DNA of 63,226 bases, counting the filler, from Pelomyxa schiedti (Eukaryota; Protista; Evosea): assembly GCA_020536535.1 (NCBI GenBank). It is 13 parts of 13 records of this genome, joined end to end, with 100 filler letters (N's around TTAATTAATTAA, not from the genome) between each part and the next. Parts side by side here need not be neighbours in the genome. Positions count along the whole stretch, not along the records: positions 18,177 to 21,730 come from JAHLWZ010000575.1; 12 more parts are not named here. One strand, 5' to 3'. Below, one piece after another: positions 18,077 to 21,730 of the stretch; position 1 is the first letter of the stretch; each line of letters starts with the position of its first letter. Made by a program: the position numbers and the translations under genes. The notes below the pieces were generated by a model. The model worked only from the letters and a program-made list of their open reading frames with translations. It searched no databases and was not told the origin of the DNA.

Positions 18077-18214
18077 NNNNNNNNNNNNNNNNNNNNNNNN
18101 NNNNNNNNNNNNNNNNNNNNTTAATTAATTAANNNNNNNNNNNNNNNNNNNNNNNNNNNNNNNNNNNNNNNNNNNNCTTCCCCCTTCTCCCTCACTGTTG
18201 ACGTGACCACCCAG

Positions 18215-20464
18215 GTTGCTTCCTTGCTTGCACACTTTGTGCCTCGAGTGCATCCCAAAATGCTCACCCGGAGCATCCCTGAATTCCACGGCCTCGTCGT
18301 CCTCTCCATCGACTGTTTCGTGCCCGGCGTGTCACTCACAGGTCCGCGACTTTGCCATCCTACGAACCCAACCAACCAACCAACCAGCCAACAACCAAAA
18401 CAAAACAACACTAACCACACCAGGCACCGATTCCGAGCGGAGGCTTCCCTGTCGACGTTTGGAAGAGCAGCCTGCTTGGGATGGTCCCGCTTGTTGTTGT
18501 TGGTGGTGGGGGTGGGTCGCAGCCACCAGGCACCACCGCGACGGCGGCGCACCAGCGCGAGTGCGGAGACTGCCGGGCCCACGACTCCCCGTGGTGGTGC
18601 GCGTCGTGCGGCATGTTCCTGTGCGACGACGACAAGGCCCACCACTCACGCGCGTGGAAGACCGCCTCACACAAGGTAACAATCCCCATTGTGCCATGGT
18701 CCCGCCCCTTTGGCGGGGGTGTGAAGATTGAAAACTAAATAACCAATTCACGCGGATACAGGTTGTATCAGTCGATCAACTCAGAAGTCAAGCAACCATT
18801 ACACCAACGGTCCACAAACAACCACTTTGTTCCAAGCACCCACAGAAGAAGCTGCAGCTTTACTGCAATACTGACAAGGCACTGATATGCCGTGACTGCG
18901 CGTGCGGGCATCTCGGTTGATTCGGGAACTAAATTTTATCAGGTTGATTGAGCACAAGAACCACGACTTCGTTTTTGTAACAGACCTGAGCTCTAAGTTC
19001 AAGGAGAAGATTGCCTCAAACTGTTCCAATTTAGCGTCGCACTTGGAGGAAGTCACAAATTCCAAAATCACGGCAATTGTGTGAAGCCTAATCCTATTTA
19101 AATAAATGAATCGATTCTATTAACATCGACAAAAGGAGTGTTGCAAAAATGCACAAGAAGTCATAGAAAAAATCGAGGCGGAGATACGATCTGAATTTGC
19201 TAAGATCATTGATGCTGCTAATGCTAGAGAGGCACACTTGCTCTCTGAACTGAAAACAATCAACGAAGCTGCCAAGAAGGCAAATTGTTGGATTCATCAA
19301 TCACACTGACACAAAAAAAAAATTAACTTCAAAGACCTTCCAAGAGCACATTGAGGGATGTGACCAGAGGTTGAAGACTGCACAAGAGGCACAAGAATAT
19401 GCACATCATGCAACAACACAGTTCTCTGATGTTGAGGTTGTTTCCGTGAATCAAGTTCTCACAGCACAGATTGAGAATATATGTAAATCCCGTGATGAGC
19501 TTGCAACTCCACAGAAACTAAAGGCAGGTTGAGCCATTAACTTCTTAAAAAAACGGAAAACAACCAAAAGGTGAGCCTTGAGTGCGAATCAGCTGCTGTT
19601 TGTGGTGCAGTCTCTTCACTGGGAAAACTTGTTCACAATTCAGCAGCGAGTTCACTGAGGTCAAAGGCGGCAAACACAACATCCACCACAACAACCACAA
19701 CGAGGACACTCAAACAACTTGCCACATCGATGGTGCCCTCCATCACACCTCGTCAGGCATGCAGGGTGTTTGTTGACAACGCCACCGGCAAAGTGTACTG
19801 GGATAGCACCTACAATCGCCAACAACTGACCGAGTTCCAAAGCATGACCAACTTCGTCAACAACACCAACCCAAGACAATTGACCCTCAAGGACGTGCCC
19901 CCCTACCCCGGCGGCACATACCAGGCAGTGCACAACGGCCACGTGTACTGCAACCCACACAACGCAGCCACGATGACCAAGGTACGTGTGAGTGACGGGT
20001 CAACAGTCGCAACTGCACCACTCCCAAACGCCGGTCACTCACACCTCTATCAATCATACTGGAACCGGGGTGGATACACAGACATTTGCTGGTATGTCGA
20101 TGCAGGGGGTGTGCTGTTCGTGGTCCACGCACCACCCAACGGCGGCAAAATACACGTCACGAGGGTGGACCCTGACTCCCTCGCAATCTTGCAGACGTGG
20201 GTGGTGCCCCGCGTCAAGGCGCATACAGGCTTTGCATTTGTTGTGTGCGGGAGGTTCTACTTTGGCAAGTCATACAACAGCAGGGAGATCGACGGGGTGT
20301 TTGACACCACCACTGGTGTTTATGATGACACTTACAGAAACTCACTCCCGAGTCCCGGCACCGACGTGATGCTGACATCGTGGATTCCATCAACAAACCA
20401 GCTCCTCGTCGTCGACCATCCCTCAGACTACACATTCTTCATCTTTGACAATGTCGCTCTGTGA
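18215..20464 (+). CDS. TRIM/RBCC protein (RING, B-box1, B-box2, coiled coil) with a C-terminal olfactomedin domain; 5'-partial
   Basis: RING LLPCLHTLCLEC...CPAC. B-box1 CGDC...WCASCGMFLCDDDKAHH. B-box2 CSKHPQKKLQLYCNTDKALICRDCALIEHKNH. Coiled-coil exons 19136-19279 and 19335-19523 are in frame. OLF motifs GGTYQAVHNG, WNRGGYTDI..VD, TRVDPDSLAILQTW, GFAFVVCG, FDTTTG. Confidence 0.85.
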
Positions 20465-20526
20465 TGTGGATTCTTCGAAAAACTTTCGTTTCTTTTCTAA
20501 GAATACGAACGTTCGTTTTTTTTCGC

Positions 20527-21460
20527 ATGAGTTCCCCAACAACGAACACAGCAGCGACGAAGACACTCCGACAACTTGCCGCGCCTAGGATGGCGCCCTC
20601 GATCACACCCCGTCAGGCACACAGGGTGTTTGTCGACAACGCAACTGGAAAAGTGTACTGGGACAGCAGCTACTATCGCCAAGAACTGACCGAGTTCGAG
20701 AGCATGGCCGACTTCATCAACAACACCAACCCAAGGCAGTTCAGACTCAAGGACGTGCACGGCTACCCAGGTGGGACGTGGCAGGCGGTGCACAACGGCC
20801 ACGTGTACTGCAACCCACACAACGCNNNNNNNNNTGGCCGACTTCATCAACAACACCAACCCAAGGCAGTTCAGACTCAAGGACGTGCACGGCTACCCAG
20901 GTGGGACGTGGCAGGCGGTGCACAACGGCCACGTGTACTGCAACCCACACAACGCAGCCACGATGACCAAGGTGCGCGTGAGCGACGGGTCGACGGTGGC
21001 AACTGCACCACTCCCAAACGCCGGTCACTCAAACCAGTCACCGTGGAACTGTGGTGCTGACACAGATATATGCTGGTATGTCGATGCAGGGGGTGTGCTG
21101 TTCGTGGTCCACGCACCACCAGACAACGGCAACATACACATCACGAGGGTGGACCCTGATTCCCTTGCAATCTTGCAGACGTGGGTGGTGCCCCGCGTCA
21201 AGAGGAGCACCGGCTATGCATTTGTTGTGTGTGGGAAGTTCTACTTTGGCAAGTCATTCAACAGCAAGGTGATCGACGGGGTGTTTGACACCACCACTGG
21301 TGTTTATGATGACACTTACAGAAACTCACTCCCAACTTCTGGCAAGGCAGTGGTTCTGACGTCGTGGATCCCGTCAACAAACCAGCTCCTCGTGATTGAC
21401 AACCCCACTGACACCACTTCAGAGTTCCACTTCTTCATCTTTGACAACGCGGCTATGTGA
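20527..21460 (+). CDS. Stand-alone olfactomedin-domain protein, tandem duplicate of the TRIM gene's last exon
   Basis: Closely similar to 19700-20464 and has no signal peptide. The ORF is continuous once the 121-bp duplication around the 10-N gap (20826-20835) is collapsed. Confidence 0.85.
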
Positions 21461-21577
21461 GGGAAACAGCCTCCCTTCTTTCCACTGGGCATCCCTTCTT
21501 GTTTTTTGTGTTGAGATCCAGAAAGACACATGAAGTTCCTGGAAACCAACGAGAACCGCGTTTTTTTTCGAGAACGA

Positions 21578-21730
21578 ATGAACAGTCCAGGCGACAGCGG
21601 CTGCCCGGGAGCGCTGCGGCCGCGGTCCGTCACGAACCTGTCGCCCCCGGCGCCCCTGTCGCGGGAGCGCGCCATCGTTGCGCGGCACCTGGCCTCCGCC
21701 GCGTCGCCCTCCTGGCTGCGGCGCTCCGCC
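21578..21730 (+). CDS. 5' start of a hypothetical gene cut by the linker
   Basis: GC-rich open frame MNSPGDSGCPGALRPRS... running to the contig end. Confidence 0.35.

Follow-up and report, generated by a model that had tools for sequence, protein, structure and literature searches.

A TRIM-like gene family ending in an olfactomedin propeller in Pelomyxa schiedti

The window analysed here is a stretch of 63,226 nucleotides made up of 13 parts of 13 records of the Pelomyxa schiedti genome assembly GCA_020536535.1, joined end to end with filler. One of these parts carries, at 18215-20464, a gene in which a tripartite RBCC region (RING, B-boxes, coiled coil) is followed by an olfactomedin (OLF) domain. 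We consider it probable that this gene belongs to a P. schiedti family of cytosolic TRIM-like E3 ubiquitin ligases in which the OLF domain is the target-binding end. The initial annotation of the window claimed a TRIM-type RBCC joined to a true OLF domain, and the domain architecture, the predicted fold, six full-length paralogues and an alignment to the RBCC structure of KAP1 all agree with this. The order that characterizes a TRIM protein is found: a RING, then B-box1, B-box2 and a coiled coil directly after B-box2.

Gene model and domains

The exon model was built from a three-frame translation of the + strand. It has seven exons in 18215-20464, which joined give 1884 nt, a number divisible by three, and translate into 627 residues without a stop; the stop codon is at 20462-20464. 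The six introns are 41-86 nt long, four of them GT-AG and two GC-AG. In the list below the slash marks the splice site, P0009 is a full-length P. schiedti paralogue, and L001 (JAHLWZ010000795.1) is the locus of a further paralogue, P0002.

18177-21730: complete 3554-nt scaffold JAHLWZ010000575.1 of Pelomyxa schiedti
18177-18214, + strand: 3' end of the intron before the first exon held, pyrimidine-rich, AG at 18213-18214
18215-18341, + strand: exon coding for the C-terminal RING part (C-x-H-x2-C-x2-C, then a loop rich in Ser and Thr, then C-x2-C; six of the eight zinc ligands)
18342-18423, + strand: intron, 82 nt, GT-AG, position as in P0009
18424-18675, + strand: exon with a Gly/Thr/Ala-rich linker and B-box1 (CGDC...WWCASC...C...H...H)
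18676-18761, + strand: intron, 86 nt, GT-AG
18762-18901, + strand: exon with the first part of B-box2 (C-x2-H-x7-C-x7-C-x2-C), phase 2 at its end
18902-18942, + strand: intron, 41 nt, GT-AG
18943-19078, + strand: exon with the closing H-x2-H of B-box2 and the first part of the long helix
19079-19135, + strand: intron, 57 nt, GT-AG
19136-19279, + strand: 48-codon exon of the coiled coil, starting and ending in phase 0, its counterpart conserved in paralogue L001
19280-19334, + strand: intron, 55 nt, GC-AG (AAG/GCAAAT); GC also in L001, GT in P0009
19335-19523, + strand: coiled-coil exon
19524-19570, + strand: intron, 47 nt, GC-AG (AAG/GCAGGT); the homologous donors of the paralogues are GT
19571-20464, + strand: last exon with a Ser/Thr-rich linker, the stop codon and, between them at about 19751-20461, the five-bladed OLF propeller

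The GenBank model of the same gene, KAH3760937.1 (P0008, "hypothetical protein Pelo_7241"), has the same junctions beginning with the B-box1 exon, and with them the two GC-AG introns. The junctions 19279/19335 and 19523/19571 put forward in the initial annotation are thus also those of the deposited model. The exons were further claimed to be in frame, and they do form one open frame of 627 codons; since 18177-18214 is an intron tail ending in AG, position 18215 is an exon start, as proposed. Replacing the GC donors by nearby GT donors did not work: a GT donor at 19287 (phase 1) requires an acceptor which creates a TAG, and with a GT donor at 19528 the frame reaches an early stop. The GC-AG introns are therefore preferred, as in the deposited annotation.

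The deposited model starts at an internal methionine (18613) because the true first exon is absent. In end-to-end alignments residue 1 of the window model corresponds to residue 23 of two paralogues, P0159 (76% identity) and P0009 (68.5%), and about 22 residues, the protein start together with the RING's first CxxC, are therefore missing. The RBCC was claimed to be complete, which it is not in the window, where only RING ligands 3-8 are present; the six full-length paralogues have the complete RING.

The OLF assignment is firm. Pfam gives PF02191 with 92.3 bits on 19571-20461 and with 84.8 bits for a second, tandem copy described below, the cut-off being 23.9. Among PDB sequences noelin is the best match (1e-21, 81 bits), and myocilin, latrophilin and gliomedin are also found. 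An AlphaFold2 model of the domain from a 45-sequence alignment has a mean predicted local distance difference test (pLDDT) score of 94.3 and a predicted template modelling (pTM) score of 0.92, and in the PDB the best 50 Foldseek matches listed are without exception OLF domains, at query-normalised template modelling (TM) scores of 0.75-0.85 (0.83 to the OLF domain of noelin). A better score as NHL or another propeller had been named as something that would speak against the assignment. Other propeller families (NHL, Kelch, WD40) were considered and rejected, Pfam giving OLF only and the best 50 Foldseek matches listed being without any of them.

In the N-terminal half the scores are lower and vary between the modules. 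The RING in the window scores 24.2 bits with zf-RING_UBOX, slightly below the cut-off; the RING of P0009 scores 21.7 bits with zf-C3HC4 (cut-off 21) and falls below threshold with the remaining RING models. B-box1 gives 16-17 bits with the ANCHR-like B-box, which is also below threshold. With zf-B_box (cut-off 24.1) B-box2 reaches 34.9 bits when only exon 3 is used, and the paralogues give 42-45 bits. Assignment of the RING and B-box1 rests on the ligand patterns and on an alignment to the KAP1 RBCC structure. The complete C3HC4 pattern (C-x2-C-x11-C-x-H-x2-C-x2-C-xn-C-x2-C) is present in all six full-length paralogues; its last pair is preceded by a long loop rich in Ser and Thr. The zinc ligands of B-box1 are nearly invariant (alignment A4), and the module aligns to B-box1 of KAP1 (6h3a). 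The seven zinc ligands of B-box2 are invariant in 23 aligned Pelomyxa, ciliate and TRIM-type sequences of the same alignment.

Residues 19-293 of P0009 align to the KAP1/TRIM28 RBCC crystal structure 6h3a with E 3e-19, followed among the structure matches by fragments of TRIM3, TRIM2 and MID1/2. The closest RBCC matches outside Pelomyxa have TRIM-NHL domain sets or are vertebrate TRIM33/TIF1 proteins, with 20-30% identity over most of the region. In the full-length AlphaFold2 model of P0009 the coiled coil is a continuous helix (209-319) followed by a second helix (322-341). The B-boxes are modelled confidently (pLDDT 82-91 for B-box1).

Nothing in the sequence points to the secretory pathway. 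No 19-residue window of the protein reaches 1.6 on the Kyte-Doolittle scale, in agreement with the claim that no membrane segment intervenes between RBCC and OLF, and the RBCC-OLF proteins and the OLF-only copy all lack a signal peptide and a hydrophobic segment. The residues of the calcium site of myocilin, D380, N428 and D478, are aligned to C, F and W in the Pelomyxa OLF domains. A cysteine aligned with C433 of myocilin is present in most Pelomyxa paralogues, and its disulfide partner is not conserved. Gliomedin is likewise without the calcium site, so loss of this site leaves membership of the OLF family possible.

The Pelomyxa family and the tandem OLF copy

At least eight P. schiedti genes have a B-box and an OLF domain together. 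Six of them are full length and code for RING-B-box1-B-box2-coiled coil-OLF proteins of 634-656 amino acids, all named automatically "E3 ubiquitin-protein ligase TRIM71"; three of the six share one 72-kb contig. Two further members, P0008 (the window gene) and P0002, are truncated at contig ends. Several shorter models, OLF-only or fragmentary, are also present. All close database relatives of the window protein are from P. schiedti. The P0009 gene has eight exons, the first of 68 nt, with all introns GT-AG and the intron positions as in the window gene. Pairwise ratios of nonsynonymous to synonymous substitution rates (dN/dS) among the OLF exons of four copies are 0.33-0.39; the OLF exons are thus under constraint, though not a tight one. 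The columns which vary between paralogues are mostly in the loops between the propeller strands.

Two of the deposited relatives need comment. The annotated 255-nt intron of P0002 (L001, 717-971) holds a conserved in-frame coiled-coil exon of 48 codons with a GC donor; the annotation skips this exon and the deposited protein is therefore without it. The B-box1 exon of the same gene is unannotated at L001:3-290, and its RING is removed by the contig start. P0010 (KAH3766200.1, 1061 amino acids), on the 39-kb contig of P0159, is annotated as a Ras guanine nucleotide exchange factor, but opens with the C-terminal 165 residues of an OLF domain whose identity to the window OLF is 84%. It is probably two neighbouring genes fused in one model.

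Downstream of the window gene there is a second OLF copy on the same scaffold, and a scaffold gap:

20527-21460, + strand: OLF-only second copy, ATG at 20527, 267 codons after collapsing the assembly overlap
20826-20833, no strand: scaffold gap of 8 N; the flanks 20705-20825 and 20835-20955 are the same 121 bases twice

The second copy begins 62 nt past the stop of the first and consists of a short Thr-rich lead-in and the OLF domain, without an RBCC. The two copies are 86% identical in DNA, with a dN/dS of 0.33. The assembly of P. schiedti, an anaerobic archamoeba, was made from single-cell data by SPAdes, using k values up to 121; RNA-seq read pairs served for scaffolding and Augustus/PASA/EVM for annotation (PMC8887013). 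Since the 121-base repeat equals the largest k used by SPAdes, the scaffolder must have joined two graph-overlapping contigs without merging them.

The GenBank model departs from ours at this end of the gene. It takes 19982-20971 as a GT-AG intron of 990 nt (AAG/GTACGT ... CCAAG/), a segment which runs from within OLF copy 1 over its stop codon and the spacer into copy 2 and includes the N gap. This joins the first third of copy 1 to the rest of copy 2, and the deposited protein is therefore chimeric. All other introns of the window gene and of two mapped paralogue models are 41-255 nt long, and copy 1 reads through to its own stop; for these reasons we take the 990-nt join as a likely annotation artefact, and a hybrid isoform of copies 1 and 2 as unlikely. 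Use of copy 2 as an alternative last exon is also unlikely, as the two copies become similar only past the linker and no acceptor in frame lies upstream, leaving the 990-nt join, over ten times the length of any other intron here, as the only way to splice it.

A scan of the spacer between the copies for bacterial promoters and terminators gave nothing, but such a scan is not meaningful for a eukaryote. At 21530-21730 a GC-rich reading frame, starting at ATG 21530 or at the in-frame ATG 21576, runs off the contig end. Both ATG 21576 and the ATG of copy 2 have a T8 tract before them. The T8 tract was considered as a common motif upstream of start codons and discarded, as it was not seen at other Pelomyxa genes.

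OLF domains of other organisms and the origin of the fusion

An exhaustive HMMER scan with the OLF domain over 1.84 billion cluster representatives gave 242 proteins at E up to 0.001. The top matches outside Pelomyxa, P0011-P0014, score 168-185 bits with 43-45% identity, followed by P0015 and P0016 with 36-37% identity and about 112-122 bits. No OLF of another amoebozoan near Pelomyxa was among the closest matches. In a separate scan of one genome per prokaryotic species, this OLF subtype was present in three metagenome-assembled genomes (MAGs) of Myxococcota (Myxococcales, Polyangiales and Polyangium). The OLF domains of the Myxococcota type have an identity to Pelomyxa of 41-45%, varying with the alignment. 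P0013 (MSP62909.1, from a Myxococcales MAG) has a lipoprotein-like leader and Stig1-type Cys-rich repeats, and the contig of P0015 shows a bacterial gene layout. The animal-type OLF domains are about 24-29% identical to the window OLF (alignment A2). Pelomyxa and P0011-P0014 have the motif DIC[WF]Y in common, with Cys at the position of D380 in myocilin, where the animal domains have DIDL.

Another group of bacterial OLF proteins is about 300 amino acids long and has N-terminal signal peptides. Of those examined, P0037, P0048 and P0057 have a C-terminal PEP-CTERM-like tail in addition to the signal peptide, e.g. IPEPSILALMGLGLLGLAG, and from these features look like exosortase-sorted bacterial surface proteins. 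P0097, P0102 and P0122 are close relatives of the PEP-CTERM-tailed proteins and also have signal peptides. P0025 (MBN2800879.1, 1178 amino acids, from a MAG labelled "Deltaproteobacteria bacterium") has a C-terminal OLF domain which scores 243 bits over the whole Pfam model, retains the animal-type DID and GNA motifs and falls within the animal-type clade; it is either a contamination of the MAG or a transferred animal-type OLF.

Fusions of a different kind are found in other protists. Five proteins (P0146, P0112, P0119, P0071 and P0124) have by Pfam a B-box1, a B-box2, a helical region and an OLF domain, without a RING; P0146 is from Nyctotherus ovalis (EukProt) and P0112 is a EukProt transcript. 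A hidden Markov model (HMM) of the Pelomyxa RBCC, run over the OLF matches, picked out three more OLF proteins. A search with a nine-sequence alignment of the B-box-coiled coil-OLF (BBCC-OLF) proteins found only the query itself and one frog TRIM39-like protein. In the ciliates the B-box-coiled coil-OLF fusion is a single uninterrupted reading frame. P0071 and P0119 lie adjacent, in tandem and without introns on L003:1-4219 (GCA_003202625.1, QFZN01006693.1), a contig of 4.2 kb with C4A4 repeats at its start and a degenerate, G/T-rich, G4T4-like end. P0119 also occurs alone on 2.1-kb contigs (among L004-L007), three of which end in clean G4T4 repeats. From the C4A4/G4T4 ends only, we infer that these contigs are probably ciliate gene-sized chromosomes. 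Their G+C content is 57%, the P0119 frame stops at TAA, and both proteins have, in the place of the RING, a shared N-terminal region of about 90 residues of unassigned kind.

A third architecture, BTB-BACK-OLF, was found in P0020 (Mataza sp. D1, Rhizaria, EukProt EP00462) and in P0021 (L012:40-1725, a transcript-sized contig). The initial annotation suggested searching genomes for RBCC-OLF combinations, and such searches gave the six full-length paralogues together with fusions of an intracellular type in ciliates (B-box-coiled coil-OLF) and in Mataza (BTB-BACK-OLF). Its description of OLF as an essentially animal domain is not supported, in view of the secreted OLF proteins of Myxococcota and of bacteria-like contigs and of the ciliate and rhizarian fusions.

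The OLF domains were placed in a maximum-likelihood tree of 61 sequences, in which the animal-type rows include two fish proteins and the one labelled Deltaproteobacteria MAG. Six groups are monophyletic: the animal type (support 100/100), Pelomyxa (100/100), the signal-peptide bacterial proteins, some with PEP-CTERM-like tails (100/98), the Myxococcota type (94/86), the ciliate BBCC type (98/92) and the BTB protist type (98/95). In the best tree the Pelomyxa domains are sister to the Myxococcota type with a support of 82/72, and the ciliate group joins the signal-peptide bacterial group (98/93). The placement beside Myxococcota fits a transfer from bacteria. An OLF phylogeny was among the checks suggested in the initial annotation. 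On a vertical, pre-animal history of the domain the results point both ways: the best tree puts Pelomyxa beside Myxococcota, and approximately unbiased (AU) tests reject neither a protist nor a eukaryote clade. The p values are 0.19 for Pelomyxa and ciliates as one clade, 0.13 for all protists as one clade and 0.08 for all eukaryote-type domains as one clade.

We weakly favour, from these sequence comparisons, as the most likely single origin that an OLF domain from Myxococcota-like bacteria was fused to a resident TRIM-like RBCC. A possible but doubtful alternative is that the B-box-coiled coil-OLF arrangement is old in eukaryotes and came to Amoebozoa and ciliates by common descent, the Myxococcota OLF proteins being recipients or slow-evolving look-alikes. 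Pelomyxa shares its order of domains with Nyctotherus ovalis and with a ciliate whose chromosomes are gene-sized, as such an origin would give, and the AU tests leave Pelomyxa with ciliates, and all protists, standing as clades. This is opposed by the best tree, with the two protist groups beside different bacterial ones, and by the exhaustive search, which gave no other amoebozoan OLF near Pelomyxa. The HMMs of the Pelomyxa and ciliate B-box/coiled-coil regions furthermore each score TRIM-NHL-type proteins above each other, and there is therefore no sign of a special tie between the two. A more far-reaching proposal would be that OLF serves, or first served, inside the cell as a substrate receptor for ubiquitin ligases across supergroups, with RBCC-OLF in Archamoebae, B-box-coiled coil-OLF in ciliates and BTB-BACK-OLF in Rhizaria, that the secreted coiled-coil-OLF proteins of animals descend from a B-box-coiled coil-OLF ancestor and that the bacterial domains are side branches or recipients. 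Noelin and myocilin would then have lost the zinc fingers and gained a signal peptide. We regard this proposal as unlikely, and fusion of a bacterial OLF to a resident RBCC remains the weakly favoured origin.

Function of the proteins and its meaning

TRIM ligases are classified by their C-terminal recognition domain; the NHL domain in TRIM71 or TRIM2/3 and the SPRY domain in TRIM5 or TRIM21 choose the target. By analogy with these TRIM-NHL and TRIM-SPRY ligases, the RING of the Pelomyxa proteins would bring in an E2 charged with ubiquitin, the helix of about 110 residues would together with the B-boxes hold the protein as a dimer or a larger assembly, and the OLF propeller would bind a target which could then be ubiquitinated. 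Ligase activity, cytosolic location and target binding by OLF are in this way predicted from domain content and analogy. The best indirect support for OLF as a recognition module is its occurrence in the substrate-receptor position on two different E3-type scaffolds. The expansion of the family, its tandem copies and the variation centred on the loops together suggest a recognition family with diverse targets.

Several observations weigh against this reading. The first exon is absent from the assembly; it lies past the contig edge and carries the start codon and the RING's first CxxC. Two of the six introns of the window copy require GC donors, where annotated P. schiedti introns are 98.41% GT-AG and 1.59% GC-AG (PMC8887013), and the copy could therefore be poorly spliced or decaying. 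The true 3' end of the gene is disputed by the GenBank splice from copy 1 to copy 2. The RING and B-box1 are at or under the Pfam thresholds, and the RING is modelled with low confidence in the full-length AlphaFold2 model. Finally, the ciliate B-box-coiled coil-OLF proteins lack a RING, and their architecture therefore does not by itself imply ligase activity.

The first three of these points could mean that the window copy is decaying or mis-assembled, that its RBCC and OLF exons do not form one message and that only the OLF part or nothing is made, in which case the family may still be real elsewhere. The two GC donors stand where P0009 has GT, the scaffold is short and has an RNA-seq scaffolding gap with a duplicated 121-nt overlap, and the deposited model is chimeric for two OLF copies. 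We nevertheless find this explanation unlikely. The copy has 627 codons without a stop or a frameshift and a dN/dS of about 0.33-0.39 against the paralogues, and the annotation pipeline, which used transcript data, picked these junctions. Moreover, the L001 paralogue has the same AAG/GCA donor, which is therefore shared and not a private lesion of the window copy.

It is slightly less probable still that the proteins are real and cytosolic but work as non-catalytic scaffolds or receptors, e.g. as cargo receptors or B-box/coiled-coil assemblies. The ciliate proteins without a RING would fit this, as would the long Ser/Thr-rich insert of the Pelomyxa RING, its weak Pfam score and its low model confidence. 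All eight zinc ligands of the RING are however kept in the six full-length paralogues, the closest RBCC relatives are of the TRIM type, a family known for E3 ligase activity, and the BTB-BACK-OLF relatives place OLF on a second E3 scaffold. That the OLF works extracellularly, as in all characterised OLF proteins and with secreted bacterial proteins as its nearest relatives, the RBCC-OLF proteins being exported by an unconventional route, is very improbable for chains which lack both a signal peptide and a membrane segment, carry zinc fingers requiring a reducing compartment and do not conserve the disulfide partner or the calcium-site residues of the animal domains. A cytosolic TRIM-like ligase with OLF as its target-binding end is thus the reading we prefer.

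Among known systems the TRIM-NHL proteins (TRIM71/LIN-41, TRIM2, TRIM3 and TRIM32) come closest in layout, with a RING, B-box1, B-box2, a coiled coil and a C-terminal beta-propeller. The Pelomyxa proteins differ from them by a five-bladed OLF instead of a six-bladed NHL propeller, by the absence of a filamin domain and by their amoebozoan host. KAP1/TRIM28 (6h3a) can be aligned over the RING, both B-boxes and the coiled coil, but the identity is low, its C-terminus is PHD-bromo, and the long Ser/Thr-rich RING loop belongs to Pelomyxa. Noelin/OLFM1, myocilin, latrophilin and gliomedin share the Pfam family and the fold (TM about 0.8), and noelin and myocilin also have their OLF placed after a coiled coil. 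These animal proteins are secreted or on the cell surface, whereas the Pelomyxa proteins lack the signal peptide, the calcium residues and the disulfide partner and their OLF is outside the animal-type clade. The Myxococcota proteins with Cys-rich repeats and OLF (e.g. MSP62909.1) have the closest OLF sequences outside Pelomyxa and share DIC[WF]Y, but unlike the Pelomyxa proteins they have no RBCC and carry Stig1-like Cys-rich repeats together with a lipoprotein or signal sequence. The layout of P0020/P0021 is that of the KLHL (BTB-BACK-Kelch) Cullin-3 adaptors, with a propeller in the substrate-receptor position; the propeller in P0020/P0021 is OLF and not Kelch, and the window gene has its OLF on an RBCC and not on a BTB-BACK scaffold.

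Sardiello et al. held the tripartite motif to be exclusive to metazoans (PMC2533329). The proteins described here are from P. schiedti, a member of Amoebozoa, and do not conform to this; the view was already weakened by the TRIM37-like protein DdTRIM of Dictyostelium, by which a tripartite-motif protein was known to exist in Amoebozoa (PMC5758549). DdTRIM is a single, TRIM37-related gene and the Pelomyxa family is expanded and ends in OLF, a distinction made from the published description. The initial annotation knew of no OLF class of TRIM proteins, and our literature searches found none either. No paper in the searchable literature has both "olfactomedin" and "Pelomyxa", and our searches of the literature on olfactomedin with TRIM, B-box, protist or non-metazoan gave no description of the architecture. 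The sequences have been public, but mislabelled as "TRIM71", "hypothetical protein" or "Olfactomedin-like domain". What appears to be new, judged from sequence, is the recognition propeller of a TRIM-type ligase-like protein, together with a use of OLF inside the cell and outside animals.

As a TRIM family of an amoebozoan, ending in a propeller of its own, the Pelomyxa proteins extend the taxonomic and structural range of the tripartite motif. With OLF on three different E3-type scaffolds in three protist lineages and in secreted bacterial proteins, the fold is not bound to animals and, by prediction, not to the extracellular space, which is relevant to the biology of myocilin in glaucoma and to that of noelin and latrophilin. 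It can now be tested what an OLF domain without a calcium site or a disulfide recognises, and whether the domain has moved between bacteria and eukaryotes. P. schiedti has cytoplasmic bacteria and a methanogen and feeds on bacteria, as mentioned in one account of the organism (PMC10579272). A role of the RBCC-OLF proteins in handling prey or resident prokaryotes is speculation, though a reasonable guess; an expanded family of receptor-like ligases would be a candidate for the cell-autonomous handling of bacteria.

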